Shown: positions 6,815 through 53,565 of the stretch, in pieces
How positions within the stretch are numbered: position 1 is the first letter of the stretch
Layout of the letters: the number at the start of each line of letters is the position of its first letter
Source of the DNA: Podarcis pityusensis
Lineage: Eukaryota
Length of the DNA: 64,000 bases
Assembly (NCBI GenBank): GCA_964106645.2
Contig: CAXKZF020000137.1
Direction: 5' to 3' (one strand)
Position numbers and translations under genes: made by a program
Notes under the pieces: generated by a model
Databases searched by the model: none
Told to the model about the DNA's origin: nothing
The model's input: the letters and a program-made list of their open reading frames with translations, nothing else

Positions 6815-6909
6815 GCCCCCCACAAATCCCCAGGCGCACACCGATCGCGCACAAGGGATCCAGGCGATGAGCGGGTCTGATGATCGAGCCGCTCGCCGAG
6901 AGCCTCATA

Positions 6910-6928
6910 ATGTGAAGAGCGCACACAT
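6910..6928. promoter_or_regulatory. TetR operator ATGT-N11-ACAT (copy 1)
   Basis: atgt gaagagcgcac acat upstream of tetR; same spacing at 7648, 9633 and 9668. Confidence 0.6.
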
Positions 6929-6948
6929 GAGCATGGAGGCGAGCACCG

Positions 6949-7548
6949 TTGACCACGTCGACTCGGACGAGCTATCACCACGGAGATCTTCGCACTGAGC
7001 TGATCGCGGCGGCGATGCGCAAGCTCGAGATCGGCGAGTCGTTCTCCCTGCGCGGCCTGGCCCGCGAGACGGGGGTCTCGGCGACTGCGCCCTACCGGCA
7101 CTTCACCGATCGAGACGCTCTGGAATCTGCCCTGGCAGCCAAGGGCCTTCACGAGCTGCGCGCCGAGCTCGCCCGCCAGGGCGGACTGCCCTCGAGCGCC
7201 GACGAGCTCGCCGATCTCGCGGTGGGATACGTGGAGTTCGCCCTGCGCAGGCCGGCCCTGTTCCGGCTGATGTTCGGCAACGCCTGCGATGTCGACGACC
7301 AGGATCGAGTGCAGGCCGCCGCCGATGTGCACGAGCTGCTGGCTGCTGCCGTCACCAATGTCTTCCCGGAGTCAGACCCTGTTGACCTCACCCTCGCCGG
7401 GTGGGGGCTGGTCCACGGGCTGGCCTGCCTCTACCTCGACCGCAAGCTCGAGCCAGGCTCCATCGAAGAGGTCGCAGCGCAGGTGCGCGCGTCCTTCCTC
7501 GCCGTCCTGACCGCCTCGCCGAGTGGGGCTCCGAGCCACCGCACCTGA
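6949..7548 (+). CDS. TetR/AcrR family regulator (WHG-type C-terminus)
   Basis: YHHGDLR, FSLRGLARETGVSATAPYRHF, WGLVHGLA. Confidence 0.9.
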   Translation: MTTSTRTSYHHGDLRTELIAAAMRKLEIGESFSLRGLARETGVSATAPYRHFTDRDALESALAAKGLHELRAELARQGGLPSSADELADLAVGYVEFALRRPALFRLMFGNACDVDDQDRVQAAADVHELLAAAVTNVFPESDPVDLTLAGWGLVHGLACLYLDRKLEPGSIEEVAAQVRASFLAVLTASPSGAPSHRT

Positions 7549-7647
7549 CCGGCCATCGCTGCAGGACCCTCAGCCACCTGAAGGCCCCGATCCGGGCCGC
7601 TGGCCGCGAACACCCTTGACCACACCTCGCCACCCCGACTATCCTTA

Positions 7648-7666
7648 ATGTTAACACTGCTTACAT
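7648..7666. promoter_or_regulatory. TetR operator ATGT-N11-ACAT (copy 2)
   Basis: ccttaatgttaacactgcttacattgagg, downstream of a ttgacc -35-like hexamer. Confidence 0.65.
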
Positions 7667-7754
7667 TGAGGAGGTCGGTCGTGGTTCTTCTGCACATTGA
7701 ACCAGCGAAAGCGGATGACCGCAGGGTGGGACGAGACGTCGGAGGGATCGTCTC

Positions 7755-40161: not shown

Positions 40162-41533
40162 TGGGGCCTGACCCCGGTTCTTGGACACGCTGAATCCAGC
40201 ATCTGCTGGGGAAGCGAGATGATCGAGGGACCATGGCCAGGAAGAACTACTCCGAGGAGTTCCGTCGTCAGGCCGTCGACTTGTGTGAGTCCACGCCGGG
40301 GGCCACGGTCCGCGGTATCGCTGAGGACTTGGGCATCGTGCGCGGCACGCTGCGTCAGTGGCTCCAGGCGTACGGGACGGGCAAGAAGACCGCTGCCGAC
40401 GGGACGGCGACCTCCAGCCCCTTGCAGTCCAAGGCAGCGCCACCGGGGCCGAGCGAGGAGGAGTCGCTCGAGCAGCGGGTGGCTCGGTTGGAGGCCGAGA
40501 ACGCGACGCTGAGGGTGCAGGCGACGAAGCTGACCACCGAGCGGGAGATCCTGCAGAAGGCGGCCAAGTATTTCGCCGGGGAGACGCGCTGGTGAGTCGC
40601 TTCCAGTTCGTCGCCGACAACTCCGCCACCTACCCGGTGAAGCGACTGTGCGAGCTCCTCGAGGTGAGGCGCTCATCGTTCTACGCCTGGCAGGCAGGCG
40701 CACCAGCCAGGACCGAGCGGGCTGCGGCGGACGCCGAGCTCGAGACTCGGATCCGCAAGGTCCACACCGCCGACAACACCGTCGGAGCCCCGAGGATCAC
40801 TGCCGAGCTCAATGACGGGGTCCCCCAGGGCGAGCGGGTCAACCACAAGCGGGTGGCGCGGGTGATGCGCGCGGCCGGGATCACCGGATACGTCAAGCGA
40901 CGCAAGGTCCGCACGACCGTGCCCGAGCCGGCCGATCGGAAGGTGCCTGACCTGCTCAAGCGCGACTTCACCGCCACCGCGCCGAACCGGCGCTACGTCG
41001 GTGACATCACCTACCTGCCGCTGTCCCAGGCAGCCGGCGGTGGGAATCTCTACCTCGCGACCGTGATCGACTGCTACTCCCGTCGCCTCGTCGGCTGGGC
41101 CATCGCCGACCACATGCGCACCGAGCTCGTCGAAGACGCACTCAAGGCCGCCGCCACGACCAGAGGATCACTCGCTGGGGCCGTCTTTCACAGCGACCAC
41201 GGGTCGGTCTACTGCTCGAAGGACTACGTCACACTCTGCAGCACGCTCGGCGTCGCTCAGTCCATGGGCGCCGTCGGCTCCTCGGCCGACAACGCGCTGG
41301 CAGAGTCGTTCAACGCCGCCCTGAAGCGAGAGGTCCTCCAGGACGCCAAGACCTGGCCCGACGAGCTCACCTGCCGCCGGCAGACATTCAAATGGCTCAC
41401 CCGCTACAACACCAAGCGCCGCCACTCCTGGTGCCGCTACAACACGCCGATCACCTACGAGATCGCCGCCACCGCTACGCTGCAACCTGCTGCGTAATCA
41501 CACCCCGTGTCCAAGGACCGGGGGTAGGGCCCA
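40162..41533 (+). mobile_element. IS3-family element (orfA 40233-40595, orfB 40592-41497)
   Basis: TG..CA imperfect IRs containing cttggacacg; YVGDITY, HSDHGS, DNALAES. Confidence 0.95.
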
Positions 41534-42539: not shown

Positions 42540-43301
42540 CTAGCGCGCTCCGCCGACGTTGATCAGGGAGCCAACCTCAACGCGTGCATTGTGCTGCTTG
42601 CTAGCGCTGCGCGAAAGTTCGTGAGCCTTCGTCGCGTCTACTGGTCTGTTCAGCGTCACCTCGACGTCGTGGCACATGCCTGTGATGCTCGCGCTCTTCA
42701 CCATGTGGCCGTCGATCCCGTCTGTCAGCAGGTCGTCGGCGATTGCTCGGCGCTCGATCATGGTCGGACCCCGTGTGAACGAGACCGGGTAGGGGAAGTT
42801 CTCTTGGTCTGCGTAGGTCTGCAGCCGCTGTGCCTCCTCGTCGCCCGATCCGCCGAGCTGGATGACTAGCCCGTCGGTGGGGTCGGCCCAGTACAGTCCA
42901 CCGAAGGTCGACCCGGGTCGTGTCTTCTCGGCGGCTGTGAGGCGTTGTGCGAAGGAGTCGACGACGTCGAAGTTTGTGCCTAGGCCGCTCGTGCCCTCCG
43001 GGGTTCTGTTCGCTGCCGCATTGGGCTGGCAGGTTGGCGCCTGAACCCAAAGGGGTGCCGAGCCACCAGCCGCGGTTGAGATCGGGGTACCGCTTCGGGT
43101 TGGCTCGACAGGCGCAGAGACGGCGAGCACCGTAATCAGTGCGGCTGCGGCGGCCCCACCCCCGACGGCTGCAACGCGTCGCTTCTGCCGTCGGCGCGCT
43201 GCCGCGTTGAGGATGTCGCCGAACGGGGGAACGTGGTGACGAGCCAGCCCGGCCTCGCGGTCGATGAGCTCGCGGACGTCGTGGACGGACGGGGTGCTCA
43301 T
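42540..43301 (-). CDS. anti-sigma factor candidate with protease-prodomain-like extracellular part
   Basis: TGATG-coupled to ECF sigma; cytoplasmic helix, RRRQKRR, single TM, FGGLYWAD..LVIQL domain. Confidence 0.7.
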   Translation of the reverse strand: MSTPSVHDVRELIDREAGLARHHVPPFGDILNAAARRRQKRRVAAVGGGAAAAALITVLAVSAPVEPTRSGTPISTAAGGSAPLWVQAPTCQPNAAANRTPEGTSGLGTNFDVVDSFAQRLTAAEKTRPGSTFGGLYWADPTDGLVIQLGGSGDEEAQRLQTYADQENFPYPVSFTRGPTMIERRAIADDLLTDGIDGHMVKSASITGMCHDVEVTLNRPVDATKAHELSRSASKQHNARVEVGSLINVGGAR

Positions 43302-43781
43302 CAGGCTTCTCCTAGGTGCGTGCGCAGAGCGGTGCGGGCTCGTGACAGACGCGACTTGACGGTGCCCACGGGTACTTCGAGGTCTGCCGCGATCTCGTCG
43401 TCGGTCAGCCCGAGCGCGGCGTGACGGACAAGGACTTCGCTGTGCAGGGGTGGCAGGTCGAGCACGGCCTGCCACACCTCTCGGAGGCGGACGTCGTCAG
43501 GGGCGGCGCCGCCTTGCAGGTCTGGGTCGAGCATCGGCCGTAGCCGATGTCGACGGCGTGCGTCGTCGATGGCGAGGGCGGTACCCCACGGTGCGCAACC
43601 ACGCCACCGGCCGCTCGTACCGAGAGACCTTGTTCCAGTGCAGGACGAGGCGGGTGAACGTCTCCTGTGCGCAGTCTTCCGCGATCGCGCGCGACCCGCA
43701 CAGGACGGTCAGCTCAGCGACCAGGCGGGGGTAGTTGGCCGTGTAGAGCTGCTCGAGCTCAGCGGCCTGGTTCGTCCTCAC
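43301..43781 (-). CDS. ECF sigma factor (SigE/ECF39-like), frameshifted near 43530-43580
   Basis: AEDCAQETF..HWNKV, WLRTV, EIAADLEVPVGTVKSRLSRAR. Confidence 0.85.
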
Positions 43782-44291: not shown

Positions 44292-44322
44292 CGCCGTGCG
44301 AGCAAGAGACGCCCTCGACGCG

Positions 44323-44347
44323 TGCTCAGTGACGATCGTCGTGAGCG
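44323..44347. other. isolated res site I copy (hybrid arms)
   Basis: tgctcagtgacg-AT-cgtcgtgagcg. Confidence 0.65.
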
Positions 44348-45067: not shown

Positions 45068-45580
45068 TTGCCTTCCATCACTGTGTTGCCAGCGAAGGTG
45101 GCTCCCGGTGGGTCCGTCACAGTCATAGGAAGCGCCTTCGGGACCGCGTGCAACGACGTCGGCCCAACTACGGAGCCAGCCCTTGGTGATCCCGCGATCG
45201 ACATCGACTTGATCCTGAGCGCTGACGGCAGCTCATCGACCCTTCTCACGGTCGACGCCGACGCTGACTACGCCTTCACCCAGCGCGTCACTATGCCTGC
45301 CGACGTCACCGGACCTGTGGAGATCTACGCGACCCTCGCCGAGGGCTACGACACGGACCCGGTCGCCCTCACGATCCAGGGGGTGCAACCCCCAGTCGCC
45401 GCGCCCTCAGCATCCACCGACGCCGCTCGGCCAGCTGTCGTCCAGACCGACTCTCCTCCCAAGAGCAAGGACAACGGGCCGGTTCTCCTGCTTGGTGGCG
45501 CATGCGCCATCGCGCTGATCGCAGCCGCCCTCGGCATCAGCCGCTCCCGTAGGCAAGGTGCGTCGCGTCCTGCCCACTGA
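45068..45580 (+). CDS. surface protein with C-terminal PAVVQTD-TM-basic tail; signal peptide damaged
   Basis: Ig-like VAPGGSVTVIG segment; upstream in-frame AHA-DC cleavage-like site without a start codon. Confidence 0.6.
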   Translation: MPSITVLPAKVAPGGSVTVIGSAFGTACNDVGPTTEPALGDPAIDIDLILSADGSSSTLLTVDADADYAFTQRVTMPADVTGPVEIYATLAEGYDTDPVALTIQGVQPPVAAPSASTDAARPAVVQTDSPPKSKDNGPVLLLGGACAIALIAAALGISRSRRQGASRPAH

Positions 45581-45643
45581 CGATCGTCACTGAGCAGGCT
45601 GCTGCCCCCTGCTTGCGTCCCATTCGACGATCGTCACTGCACG
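45571..45643. other. two tandem res site I copies
   Basis: tgcccactgacg-AT-cgtcactgagca (45571-45596) and tcccattcgacg-AT-cgtcactgcacg (45618-45643). Confidence 0.65.
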
Positions 45644-45747
45644 CCGCCGAGCGAGGGTAGGACCTCGAACCCTCGGACGAGGTTTCCCCCGCCAACGCGT
45701 GGGCCGCGATAGGCCGCTCCGAAGGCGTGAGCGAATAGTTAGGACTC

Positions 45748-45775
45748 GATGGAACCAACCGCTCGCCTCAGCGTC
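45748..45775 (+). promoter_or_regulatory. ECF promoter GATGGAAC-N16-CGTC
   Basis: 8 nt before ATG 45784. Confidence 0.7.
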
Positions 45776-45783
45776 ATATGGGC

Positions 45784-46266
45784 ATGAAGCTGCAGAACCG
45801 TGAGGGCTTGGCGGAGATCCACGCCGCCTTCTACCCCCGCCTGGTGGGTGAGCTGACCGTGGTGGCCGGCTCCCGCGCCTCGGCTGAGGACTGCGCTAAC
45901 GAGGCGTTCACCCGGCTGGTGCTGCACTGGAACAAGGTGTCGAAGTACGACAGTCCCATTGCCTGGCTACGCACCGTCGGATACCGGCTAGCGGTCGACG
46001 AGCAGCGACGAGCACGCCGTCAACTGGCTGTGCCTGATCACGAACCCTCCTCGAGGACCGGCGAGGACTACCCGCACTCGCACGAGATTTGGCAAGCGAT
46101 CCGCGACCTGCCCGTCAGCCAGCGTGAGGTCGTGGTCCGCCGAGCCGTGCACGACCTCACCGACGCCGAGATCGCCGAAGAACTCGCCGTGCCTATCGGA
46201 ACCGTCAAGTCGCGCCTGTCCCGGGCGCGCACCACTCTTCGCTCTCGTCTAGGAGAACCGTCATGA
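45784..46266 (+). CDS. ECF sigma factor (SigE/ECF39-like)
   Basis: AEDCANEAF..HWNKV, WLRTV, LPVSQREVV, EIAEELAVPIGTVKSRLSRAR. Confidence 0.92.
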   Translation: MKLQNREGLAEIHAAFYPRLVGELTVVAGSRASAEDCANEAFTRLVLHWNKVSKYDSPIAWLRTVGYRLAVDEQRRARRQLAVPDHEPSSRTGEDYPHSHEIWQAIRDLPVSQREVVVRRAVHDLTDAEIAEELAVPIGTVKSRLSRARTTLRSRLGEPS

Positions 46267-47027
46267 GCAGTCCCGATCTCGATGCCGTCCGCGCCCTCAT
46301 TCACGACGAAGCTGACCGTGCACGCCGAGACGTGCCCTCGCTGGACTCATTCATCGCGGCCGCGAGCACCCGTCAGCGCCGCCGCCGCCACGCAGCGCTG
46401 GGCGCGGTCTTGGGAGCAGCGGTCGTCGCTGGTGGGGTGGGGCTGACCGTTCAAGGGGGTGACCAACCCGCGGTCGTCAACGTCGCCTCGAGCCCGTCAT
46501 CGTCCTTCCAGTCCGCCGGCGCTGACCTCCCCGCGCATCCCCGTCCGGACCAGGTCGCAGATCACCTAGCCGAGACGCTTAACGGCCAGGGCCGCAACGG
46601 CGGCGCGACGTGGATCTCCGAGAAGAAGACACTCAACATCTACGTCTCTGGGCCTGCAGGCGGCAAGGACGCCGCAGTCGAGAAGACCCAGGCCCTGGGC
46701 GATGAGCTGACCAGTACCGTCGACTTCACCGTCACGGTGCACGCGGGGGGTCTGCGCTCGGAGGCGCAGCTGGTCTCGACGATGGAGGCCGTCGCCGACA
46801 CCAAGAGCTACGACCCGAGCGGGACGGTGAAGGTCCGCTCCGAGGTGATCAACTACGAGACGGGGAAGGTCGCGGTCGACGTGACCAGCCAGGCCGCCGC
46901 CGACATCGTCGAGAAGAAGTTCGGCGACGCCGTCGAGGTCCAGGTCAAGGCCCCCTACACCCAGGAAGAGATCGAGGAGATGTTCGGCGTGCTGTACAAG
47001 AAGGGCACCCCCGACCACGACTTCTAG
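46263..47027 (+). CDS. anti-sigma factor candidate; extracellular domain is a copy of the neighbouring protease propeptide
   Basis: ATGA-coupled to sigma; RQRRRR + TM; C-terminal ~150 aa align with the pro-region of 47101-48327. Confidence 0.8.
   Translation: MSSPDLDAVRALIHDEADRARRDVPSLDSFIAAASTRQRRRRHAALGAVLGAAVVAGGVGLTVQGGDQPAVVNVASSPSSSFQSAGADLPAHPRPDQVADHLAETLNGQGRNGGATWISEKKTLNIYVSGPAGGKDAAVEKTQALGDELTSTVDFTVTVHAGGLRSEAQLVSTMEAVADTKSYDPSGTVKVRSEVINYETGKVAVDVTSQAAADIVEKKFGDAVEVQVKAPYTQEEIEEMFGVLYKKGTPDHDF
46736..46985. repeat. 250-bp inverted repeat, left arm (partner 47779-48028)
   Basis: About 5 mismatches by manual comparison. Confidence 0.95.
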
Positions 47028-47045
47028 TAGCGGTCTCCGTACGCG

Positions 47046-47087
47046 CGATGAAGGGCCGAGTGTGCACACGCTCGGCCCTTCATCGCA
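47046..47087. terminator. bidirectional terminator hairpin between convergent genes (coordinates approximate)
   Basis: gcgatgaagggccgag-tgtgcacacg-ctcggcccttcatcgc. Confidence 0.75.
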
Positions 47088-47100
47088 TCTATTGCCTGCG

Positions 47101-48400
47101 TCAGTACGTGGCCGGGTATCCACCGAGCTCGTTGGCGATCGTTGCCGCCCGAGAGAACCGCGCGAAACCGCCCTGCACAATGCACGAGTGCACCCCAAGG
47201 GCGACGTAGTCGCCGCTATCCGGGGACGCGGAATTCGGCTGCGCCACGGTGCCACCAGAGTCACCGCCCACGGTGCCGCTGATGTTGGTCGTCGTCAGCG
47301 GCACACCGCAGGTGCGATCGAAAACCGTGCGGACTTCACCCGTATGGACGCCGCTGTTCGCTCCCGAGACGAGCAGGGGCTGGCCCACGCTCATCGTGTC
47401 GTCCCACGCGGTGATCGTGCGGCTGTCGCTGCCGTACCTGCCGCCGATCCAGAACTCGTTGCGGACTGAGTAGCCGTTGGGGGGGTCGATGATGGCCCCA
47501 TCGACGTACTCATCGAACTGCCAGGTGGTGCCCGCCGAGGTCGCGATGCCGTACCTCGGCCACTCGTACCGGTAGTAGGAGCTTGTGCCGAAAGCAAAGC
47601 AGTGGCCCGCAGTCACTAGACGAACCTGGCCTCCGCTGACCCACTTCAAGCCGGTGGTGCAGTTCGCGGTGTCCCCAGCGCCAGCGTCTGGAGTGCAGTC
47701 TCCGGTGGTCTGGACACACATTGCTGTGCCTCCATTCCACCCGTTGCTGGGCGAGTCGTTCCGGCGGTTCTCGACCTGGAACATCCTCTCGATCTCTTCC
47801 TGGGTGTATGGGGCCTTGACCTGGACCTCGACGGCGTCGCCGAACTTCTTCTCGACGATGTCGGCGGCGGCCTGGCTGGTCACGTCGACCGCGACCTTCC
47901 CCGTCTCGTAGTTGATCACCTCGGAGCGGACCTTCACCGTCACGCTCGGGTCGTAGCTCTTGGTGTCGGCGACGGCCTCCATCGTCGAGACCAGCTGCGC
48001 CTCCGAGCGAAGACCCCCCGCGTGCACCTGCACCTTGACGTTGGACCCGCGGATCACCTCTGACACAAGCGTCTTGACCTTGTCCACAGCCGCGCTCTCG
48101 CCCAGGTCGGGGCCCGCCACGTAGATGTTGAGGGTCTCCTCCTCGGAGATCCACGTCGCGCCGCCATCGCGACCAAGGGTCTCAAGGGTGGCCTTGAGCT
48201 TCTCGGCGACCTGGTCAGGACGAGCAGCTCCCCACCTAAACGCCAGGGCCTCCTCAAAGCGGTCGATCTCCTCGACGGTCAGAGGACGGGTCGAATGGGT
48301 GATCTCGCGGGCGAGCTCCATCGTCATCGGCGGCTGAGGGTCGGTGTCGACAGCGGTGGCGGCGCCGCCAACGGCAAGAGTGGCGAAGGCGGCAGAGAAA
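47101..48400 (-). CDS. secreted S1 (alpha-lytic/streptogrisin-like) serine protease with propeptide; start uncertain, probable frameshift near 48398
   Basis: CTTG, VTAGHC, VDGAII, GGDSGG; in-frame signal-like FSAAFATLAVGGAATA upstream of the ORF-track start. Confidence 0.88.
47779..48028. repeat. 250-bp inverted repeat, right arm
   Basis: Reverse complement of 46736-46985. Confidence 0.95.
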
Positions 48401-48768: not shown

Positions 48769-48896
48769 CGTCGACGGTGTCTCAGCTTGGTGATGGCACC
48801 GACCCGGGTGTTCGCAGCTATTACGGGAAGGTCAGCGAGACGGTCTCGACCGTCGAGGAGGCCGGCGAGCACGTCACTGTCCTCGGCACGGTCCAA
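48769..48896 (+). repeat. 128-bp exact copy of internal part of lipoprotein gene (15469-15596)
   Basis: No mismatch seen. Confidence 0.92.
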
Positions 48897-49408
48897 TGGG
48901 GCTGTGCATGATCCAGTGTCTGCGGGCCGCTGGGGTGAGCGAGATCGTCGTCTCCGAGCCCTCGCAGGTCAAGCGTGAGGTCGCCCTGGCCATGGGAGCC
49001 AGCGCCGCCATCGACCCCAGCGAACGCGGCGCGCTGCAGCGTGAGGTCGCTGCCCGCACGGACGGGGTCGGGGCGGACGTCGTCATCGAATCGGTCGGCA
49101 TCACCGCGACCTACCGTGAGGCGCTCGAGGTGGTCCGCAAGCGCGGGAAGGTCATGTTCTTCGGAGCGGTGGTCCCAGATATCGAGCTGCCCTTGCTGCG
49201 GATTCTGCACCGCGAGCTTGAGCTCATCGGATGTACCGGGGCCAACGACGAGACAGCCGCCGCGATCGCGGCGTTGGCGGACGGTACCGTCGACCTGTCG
49301 GCCATCCCGCGCGCCACCGTCGGGCTGGCTGATACCGAGGCTGGTCTGGCTCACCTGGCAGATCCCGGCTCTGGAGTCGTCAAACTTTTCATCAACCCGG
49401 CCGGTTGA
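48897..49408 (+). pseudogene. zinc-binding dehydrogenase (MDR) 3' half
   Basis: VSEPSQVKRE, GADVVIESVG, VKLFINP; N-terminal domain absent. Confidence 0.8.
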
Positions 49409-53365: not shown

Positions 53366-53565
53366 NNNNNNNNNNNNNNNNNNNNNNNNNNNNNNNNNNN
53401 NNNNNNNNNNNNNNNNNNNNNNNNNNNNNNNNNNNNNNNNNNNNNNNNNNNNNNNNNNNNNNNNNNNNNNNNNNNNNNNNNNNNNNNNNNNNNNNNNNNN
53501 NNNNNNNNNNNNNNNNNNNNNNNNNNNNNNNNNNNNNNNNNNNNNNNNNNNNNNNNNNNNNNNNN
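53366..53565. other. assembly gap (200 N)
   Basis: Run of N. Confidence 1.

Follow-up and report, generated by a model that had tools for sequence, protein, structure and literature searches.

The locus considered here raises the question of how two coding sequences of different function can be almost identical over one half of a shared domain and clearly different over the other. It lies in a 64,000-nucleotide stretch of DNA (the window; contig CAXKZF020000137.1 of assembly GCA_964106645.2, deposited as Podarcis pityusensis), in which an inverted repeat joins the gene of an anti-sigma-like membrane protein to the convergent gene of a serine protease with a pro region. A first reading of the window made from its letters alone (the sequence-only reading) had seen in the repeat an old duplication with recent homogenisation and drew two inferences: that gene conversion keeps receptor and protease matched as they evolve, and that crossover between the arms would invert the ~0.8 kb between them, so that the locus could act as a phase switch. 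The explanation preferred here, which is very probably correct, is that the 250-nt near-identical part of the repeat is a gene-conversion tract and the membrane protein's ectodomain a paralogue of the pro region, with mimicry of that region and occasional inversions as set out below.

The inverted repeat

The two arms (46542-46985 and 47779-48222) are 444 nt long, 84% complementary and 793 nt apart. Both are in frame, as had been claimed, one in the anti-sigma-like open reading frame (ORF) on the plus strand and the other in the protease ORF on the minus strand. The features concerned are as follows.

46263..47027, plus strand: anti-sigma-like membrane protein of 254 aa (from the ORF and its translation)
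46542..46735, plus strand: diverged first half, N-subdomain, anti-sigma copy; 65% identical to the protease copy, synonymous divergence (dS) 0.79
46736..46985, plus strand: left arm of the 250-nt homogenised tract, C-subdomain (VHAGG...EMF) of the anti-sigma ectodomain; 245/250 against the reverse complement of 47779-48028
47101..48327, minus strand: serine protease of type S1E (as alpha-lytic protease and streptogrisin) that has a pro region at its N-terminus; the 408-aa ORF is 5'-truncated here (from a PDB profile, an AlphaFold 2 (AF2) model, Foldseek and VIA)
47779..48028, minus strand: right arm, the conversion tract in the C-subdomain of the protease's own pro region, residues ~101-183 (from arm pairing and the PDB profile match)
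48029..48222, minus strand: diverged first half, N-subdomain of the protease pro region (from arm pairing, identity matrix and tree)

With the arms paired base by base and the breakpoint located by maximum chi-square, identity was found to change at 46736 (Fisher p = 2.4e-22). In the outer part, to the left of this position, 126/194 bases match (65%) and third codon positions agree at 52%, whereas in the inner part (46736-46985 against 48028-47779) 245/250 bases match (98%), each of the three codon positions agrees at 98%, and the arms share a perfect run of up to 132 nt. The sequence-only reading had counted about five differences in 250 bp and conserved synonymous sites, and both observations held. 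There are exactly five differences, namely G/T at 46754 (synonymous), G/T at 46822 (Gly/Val), C/A at 46955 (synonymous) and GA/AG at 46977-46978 (Glu/Arg).

Concerted evolution in related genomes

An exhaustive search recovered only 35 relatives among 1.84 billion representatives; the relatives are all Janibacter. A scan of genome contigs with the protease alignment matched only Janibacter sp. G56, and a scan of metagenome contigs with the domain alignment gave no match; a DNA-pattern scan gave 13 matches that were set aside as chance, none being backed by tblastn. The complete chromosome of G56 (L004) carries the same module of sigma factor, anti-sigma-like protein and convergent protease, with arms that are 97.3% identical besides a 24-nt in-frame indel, and the same module on plasmid CP046475 of J. 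melonis M714 (L006) has arms identical at 249/250 positions and spaced 1630 nt apart. The borders of the tract fall at the same codons in the window, G56 and M714 (VHAGG at the start, EMF at the end). The M714 plasmid also holds an extra 268-aa hypothetical gene between its arms (6897-7703), and its repeat is still 249/250.

Identities from a codon alignment of 11 copies differ between the two halves. In the first half the anti-sigma-like and protease genes of the same genome are 60-66% identical and orthologues from different genomes 67-95%; in the tract the two genes of one genome are 97.3-99.6% identical and sequences from different genomes 83-90%. A dS profile in relatives, proposed earlier as a check, was high in the first half and low in the tract: between the two genes of one genome dS is 0.8-2.1 in the first half (0.79 in the window) and 0.02-0.04 in the tract (0.036 in the window), whereas between lineages the tract has a dS of 0.21-0.38. 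The maximum-likelihood tree of the first half groups the sequences by gene, and approximately unbiased (AU) tests reject within-genome pairing with p-AU between 3e-152 and 7e-4, while the tree of the tract groups them by genome (window + L001 97/97, G56 86/88, M714 92/88) and protease monophyly is rejected (p-AU 1.9e-4). Two alleles of one J. terrae-type anti-sigma (P0065 and P0071) differ at 0/159 residues before the tract and at 15/83 inside it. Since three genomes each have their own homogenised tract and the trees of the two halves conflict, the pattern is one of concerted evolution by repeated gene conversion. At least three independent conversion events are strongly supported, and concerted evolution is shown in at least three lineages, as are the borders of the tract. 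The old duplication with recent homogenisation is thereby upheld, together with the gene conversion of the first earlier inference.

An explanation that dispenses with conversion, invoking extreme purifying selection or a very recent partial duplication in one ancestor, can appeal to the fact that the tract codes for a functional subdomain. It is highly unlikely, because synonymous sites are alike within genomes but diverged between them, three lineages hold three different tract sequences and the AU tests contradict it. Less credible still is an assembly artefact, in which two diverged copies were collapsed into one consensus or one copy was duplicated by the assembler. The scaffold of the window does have an N gap (53366-53565), and the ten sequencing runs found are all in the form of Logan contigs (k=31), which stop at the arms and are unable to phase a repeat of 250 nt; those of the run that covers the locus best (X1) are low in depth as well as broken at the arms. 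Word depth in X1 is, however, 12 in the core against 5-7.5 in the flanks, and a core depth about twice that of the flanks fits two copies and not assembly collapse. Separate short contigs of X1 bear the arm-specific letters, and the same repeat is present in two complete assemblies of other strains and in several draft assemblies. Consensus collapse, which had been named as a source of spurious identity, was thus not seen.

The run X1 has A and not C at 46955 in the left arm, so the exact count of arm differences varies by sample. A minor X1 contig over window 46699-46765 (depth 2 against 6) has T at 46729 and T at 46754, which are the alleles of J. melonis L002; it probably comes from a second strain in the sample and not from a recombinant, as the match to L002 extends outside the tract. 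Draft J. melonis assemblies break exactly at the arms, with partial proteins that end or start there and contigs of 1.6-1.7 kb that match the middle segment. Assemblies of these plasmids from short reads are interrupted at the repeat, which can also give rise to inverted chimeric contigs.

The three-gene module and the domain encoded by the tract

By homology the module spans 45580-48393 of the window and consists of an ECF (extracytoplasmic function) sigma factor gene, the coupled gene of the membrane protein and the convergent protease gene. Its further features are these.

45778..46266, plus strand: ECF (SigE-like) sigma factor gene (Pfam Sigma70_r2, Sigma70_r4_2 and ECF)
47045..47086, no strand: 20-nt perfect hairpin with a 2-nt loop, 95% complementary, in the 73-nt spacer of the convergent genes (repeat search)
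48328..48400, minus strand: remnant of a signal-peptide h/c region, in frame, lacking a start codon, with TAG upstream (from a three-frame translation compared with G56)

The sigma factor carries both sigma-2 and sigma-4 domains, and its match to the NCBIfam SigE family TIGR02983 (E 1e-33) is under the family cut-off. Its stop codon overlaps the start of the next gene as ATGA, an arrangement of translational coupling. The anti-sigma-like protein begins with a short cytoplasmic stretch, an Arg-rich stretch and a single hydrophobic helix at residues ~44-64, and its ectodomain consists of a pro-region-like domain with two subdomains (residues 94-241) and a tail of 13 residues after it. In Pfam and NCBIfam it belongs to no Pfam family and has no recognised anti-sigma domain (e.g. 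zf-HC2/RskA), the sole NCBIfam match being a weak one to CU044_5270 (E 2e-4) far under the cut-off. An ECF sigma gene always precedes its homologues. Operon position, translational coupling and conserved synteny together suggest an anti-sigma role for the 254-aa protein, and the hairpin between the convergent genes is likely to be a bidirectional terminator.

In the window the protease ORF begins at an internal Met, whereas a full signal peptide is present in M714, G56 and L010. Homology to G56 and the intact relatives stops near 48393, as judged by blastn end points. The start codon and the n-region of the signal peptide have been lost at a rearrangement breakpoint near this position, which, with the dehydrogenase fragment that follows, makes the right end of the module a junkyard junction.

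Single-sequence searches of the protease and the anti-sigma-like protein against Pfam, NCBIfam and PDB gave nothing significant or above cut-off, and the structural assignments rest on a profile of 28 sequences (A3). The catalytic residues His242, Asp276 and Ser357 are invariant in all 28. Against PDB the profile matches S1E proteases with E from 1.7e-18 (2sfa) to 1e-11 (alpha-lytic protease), and its positions 89-184 match residues 65-161 of alpha-lytic protease's pro region (2pro/3pro/4pro) with a significant but modest E of 2.2e-4. The AF2 model of the protease, with a predicted local distance difference test score (pLDDT) of 82.7, has two alpha/beta subdomains at residues ~37-103 and 109-184 and then a chymotrypsin fold; Foldseek gave a template modelling (TM) score of 0.82 to SGPA, and VIA a Z of 24.7 to a Lysobacter protease with a root-mean-square deviation of 2.5 over 185 residues. 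An earlier AF2 model from a 7-sequence alignment was discarded (pLDDT 40). Residues 185-404 of the model also match the S1C-NTF2 ectodomain of the Clostridium thermocellum anti-sigma RsgI9 (7SJY; Z 12.3). Because of the profile match and the subdomains of the model, the tract (protease residues ~101-183) can be assigned to the C-domain of a pro region of alpha-lytic-protease type, and its left border coincides with the predicted boundary between the two subdomains. According to the literature on the family, such pro regions, foldases and inhibitors that can also work in trans, have this C-domain as their conserved core (bioRxiv 10.1101/2020.08.30.274340).

The ectodomain as a possible mimic of the pro region

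The mechanism is proposed as follows. The ectodomain of the membrane protein and the pro region of the protease are old paralogues. Their N-subdomains have diverged freely, to 60-66% DNA identity, while homologous recombination of the inverted copies, presumably dependent on RecA, has overwritten the C-subdomain of one gene with that of the other again and again. In this way the two copies evolve in concert in each genome and drift apart between genomes. The left border would stay fixed because heteroduplex cannot run into the diverged first half; with conversion blocked by diverged sequence, for which the tuf genes discussed below are a precedent, a stable border would need no selection. At the protein level the C-subdomain would dock on the protease with the tail in the active site, and through homogenisation the anti-sigma ectodomain would go on imitating faithfully the pro region that the protease itself carries. 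Binding or degradation of the ectodomain by the mature protease could then couple sigma activity to protease maturation. An occasional crossover between the arms, inverting the 0.8-kb middle, would probably be a by-product of this recombination and not the work of a dedicated switch.

A complex predicted from the protease catalytic domain (residues 186-408) and the anti-sigma ectodomain (residues 94-254) scored 0.89 against 0.52 for the best control, where the mark used for such scores is reached by 51/78 solved complexes and 2/108 mismatched pairs. Three runs agreed in at least 77% of contacts, with a partner pLDDT of at least 87. The predicted contacts of the ectodomain lie mostly in the tract (167-196 and 238-245), and the tail is placed against His242, Asp276 and Ser357. 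A similar complex has already been solved (4PRO), so the prediction shows likeness and not binding.

A number of points weigh against this mimicry and the matching that it implies. The complex prediction may simply recall the solved complex of alpha-lytic protease with its pro region, self-sustaining neutral conversion would give the same pattern, and the anti-sigma identity is positional, resting on no recognised domain. The protease has moreover decayed in several places: J. melonis L001-L003 retain only a 246-nt 3' stump of the gene, as noted for J. melonis GCA_023712135, and J. terrae CP144167 has none at this locus, with sigma and anti-sigma intact in both species; it is frameshifted in the metagenome contig L011 and 5'-truncated in the window. 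Such repeated loss of the protease with sigma and anti-sigma kept argues against a strict matched-pair requirement. Adaptive matching of receptor and protease by homogenisation is plausible, although the chances stand appreciably below even. The protease-loss loci lie at 8769-9089 in L001 and at 8769-9400 in L028.

An anti-sigma ectodomain that is a mimic, synchronised at the DNA level, of a protease's pro region would be a signalling design not described in the literature searched; searches on anti-sigma factors with propeptide or prodomain returned nothing relevant or comparable. The conversion is limited to one structural subdomain and joins two functionally different genes, that of a sigma-linked sensor and that of a protease zymogen. 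If the mimicry is functional, an ECF sigma factor could be informed of the maturation of a secreted protease in a simple way that is open to test, and the locus would be a clean case in nature of an interaction surface preserved by concerted evolution.

Possible inversions at the arms

The one inverted copy of the locus is the metagenome contig L011 (JGI contig Ga0671532_0064358, 1762 nt, sample 3300080651). It reads in order signal peptide, protease-type first half, arm, anti-sigma tail with stop, spacer and convergent protease, and ends inside the second arm. Aligned with the window, it follows the reverse complement of 48402-47766 first and the forward strand of 47100-47883 after that, its middle segment being inverted relative to all other copies. 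Its plus-strand arm is identical to the anti-sigma arm of L012 at 249/250 positions, and there are frameshifts in both genes, two in all, including a 4-nt deletion. The contig stems either from a true inversion by RecA-type crossover, in a locus that is decaying, or from an assembler's wrong exit from the repeat. A single orientation in relatives, which would speak against switching, was thus found in part: G56, M714, L010 and L031 have the standard order of the window, while the inverted L011 is a possible misassembly. No strand-change joint was found inside the Logan contigs aligned to the locus, which stop at the arms.

That L011 records a real, non-programmed inversion, the outcome of a crossover and possibly fixed in a decaying locus, would complement the preferred explanation and has a chance not far below even. 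Its frameshifts in both genes fit a locus free of selection. Inversions account for as many as half of the recombination events at tuf (PMC6735719), and occasional ones are accordingly to be expected at the arms here. It is, however, a single contig whose reciprocal junction would lie beyond its end in the second arm, and assemblers can leave an inverted repeat by the wrong exit. On the tuf analogy sporadic homologous inversions at the arms are likely, and one has perhaps been seen in L011.

A programmed, reversible phase switch, in which inversion toggles between a separate anti-sigma with a secreted zymogen and an anti-sigma::pro::protease fusion with a free secreted pro-domain, is improbable. 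Both inversion products are in frame, but this is automatic for homologous coding arms, since both encode the same domain. L011 has exactly the predicted junction, and near-identity is kept in several lineages; the junction falls, though, within at most 155 nt that are possibly identical in both arms, so that misassembly is possible, and the contig's genes are frameshifted. No recombinase gene lies inside the module, the nearest in the window being a serine resolvase of transposon/plasmid type (39104-39793) and an insertion sequence (IS) transposase (rve; 40358-41497) in a mobile-element context, and M714 has no annotated recombinase within 6 kb. Resolvase-type 21-nt sites at 44320 and 45579 are outside the arms. 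The protease of the window has neither start codon nor signal-peptide start, and for this reason the secreted propeptide-only inhibitor foreseen by the sequence-only reading could not be made here. The switch itself is supported neither by these results nor by the prevalence of the standard orientation; it is not refuted either, given the inverted L011 and the natural fusion described below. A toggle without a recombinase, driven by homologous recombination between the separate anti-sigma and zymogen on the one hand and an L011-like, sigma-controlled membrane fusion with a free secreted pro-domain on the other, is about as improbable as the programmed one; proteins of the P0004 type would be its second state in fixed form.

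The P0004 type is a stable natural analogue of the fusion, from a cluster of 17 members. P0004 (L009, 305-1363) follows an ECF sigma gene and consists of an anti-sigma N-terminus, a transmembrane helix, a pro-like domain and a C-terminal HExxHxxGxxH (metzincin-like) domain of ~100 aa. The search for natural fusions that had been proposed was therefore answered in one respect, by this anti-sigma::pro::metalloprotease, and not in the other, as no anti-sigma::S1 fusion was found among the homologues. In the first half of P0004, sequence of anti-sigma type and of protease type alternates as a mosaic, and in P0057 (510 aa), another member of the cluster, sigma and fusion protein are read as one product. 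The aligned range of P0016 had suggested an anti-sigma::S1 fusion, which was rejected, the C-terminal extension not being a protease. P0016, P0073 and P0074 (Janibacter sp. UYMM211 and Y6) are anti-sigma-like proteins that combine the same pro-like ectodomain with an additional domain of ~150 aa at the C-terminus.

The 21-nt sequence occurs twice in inverted orientation, at window 44320-44340 and 45579-45599, with 0 and 1 mismatch, against 0.02 occurrences expected by chance, and the copy at 45579-45599 falls where homology of the module to J. melonis L001 has its left end (45580). The adjoining region's resolvase-site motif was considered as an inversion site and rejected, being absent from the arms.

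Neighbouring sequence

Beyond the right end of the module, 48896-49408 is a 5'-truncated zinc-dehydrogenase fragment (ADH_zinc_N only). In a second sigma/anti-sigma pair the sigma gene (43301-43781, minus strand) is split: one ORF, 43497-43781, carries region 2, and another, 43301-43534, overlaps it in a different frame and carries region 4, as the result of a frameshift or a sequencing error.

Comparison with known systems

Gene conversion between inverted paralogues is textbook knowledge. The closest documented precedent for the locus, by analogy, is tufA/tufB of Salmonella, inverted genes kept in concerted evolution by RecA-dependent gene conversion (PMC5485169; PMC6735719). In both cases inverted paralogous coding stretches of one genome owe their near-identity to recombination, and the same recombination can invert the intervening DNA. 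At tuf each conversion tract is contiguous, and diverged sequence blocks it (PMC5485169); inversion is the outcome of as many as 50% of such recombination events (PMC6735719). The differences lie in what is homogenised and in what an inversion would do. Whole genes are homogenised in tuf, but only a 250-nt sub-domain segment here, and this in two genes of different function, a membrane sensor and a protease zymogen. The tuf genes are 761 kb apart, whereas the arms here are 0.8-1.6 kb apart, and inversion leaves the proteins unchanged in tuf but would create chimeric proteins here.

Intragenic and partial-intergenic invertons and shufflons (bioRxiv 10.1101/2023.03.11.532203) resemble the locus in that its coding inverted repeats could recode two proteins. 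They have short repeats, dedicated invertases and both orientations in long reads, whereas the repeat here is a 250-nt homologous coding repeat in a module with no invertase, known from assembled contigs.

Alpha-lytic protease (2PRO/3PRO/4PRO; bioRxiv 10.1101/2020.08.30.274340) shares with the protease of the module an S1E catalytic domain and a large N-terminal pro region of two domains, and in the same family the pro C-domain is the only part of the pro region present in SGPB. The sequences are very distant, with no Pfam match and PDB reached by profile only. A second pro-like copy on a sigma-linked membrane protein is a further difference, and is not described for the family in the literature searched.

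The control of anti-sigma factors by site-1 proteolysis has its paradigms in RseA/DegS, RsiW/PrsW and RsiV. Protease-linked anti-sigmas such as RsgI9 of C. thermocellum (7SJY) share with the protein considered here the form of a single-pass anti-sigma with an extracytoplasmic domain linked to a protease, and RsgI9, by its S1C-NTF2 ectodomain, gives an earlier example of an anti-sigma factor whose sensor domain is related to proteases. Here, however, the ectodomain resembles not a protease but the pro region of one, that is, an inhibitor and chaperone, and the link between the two proteins is maintained at the DNA level by gene conversion.

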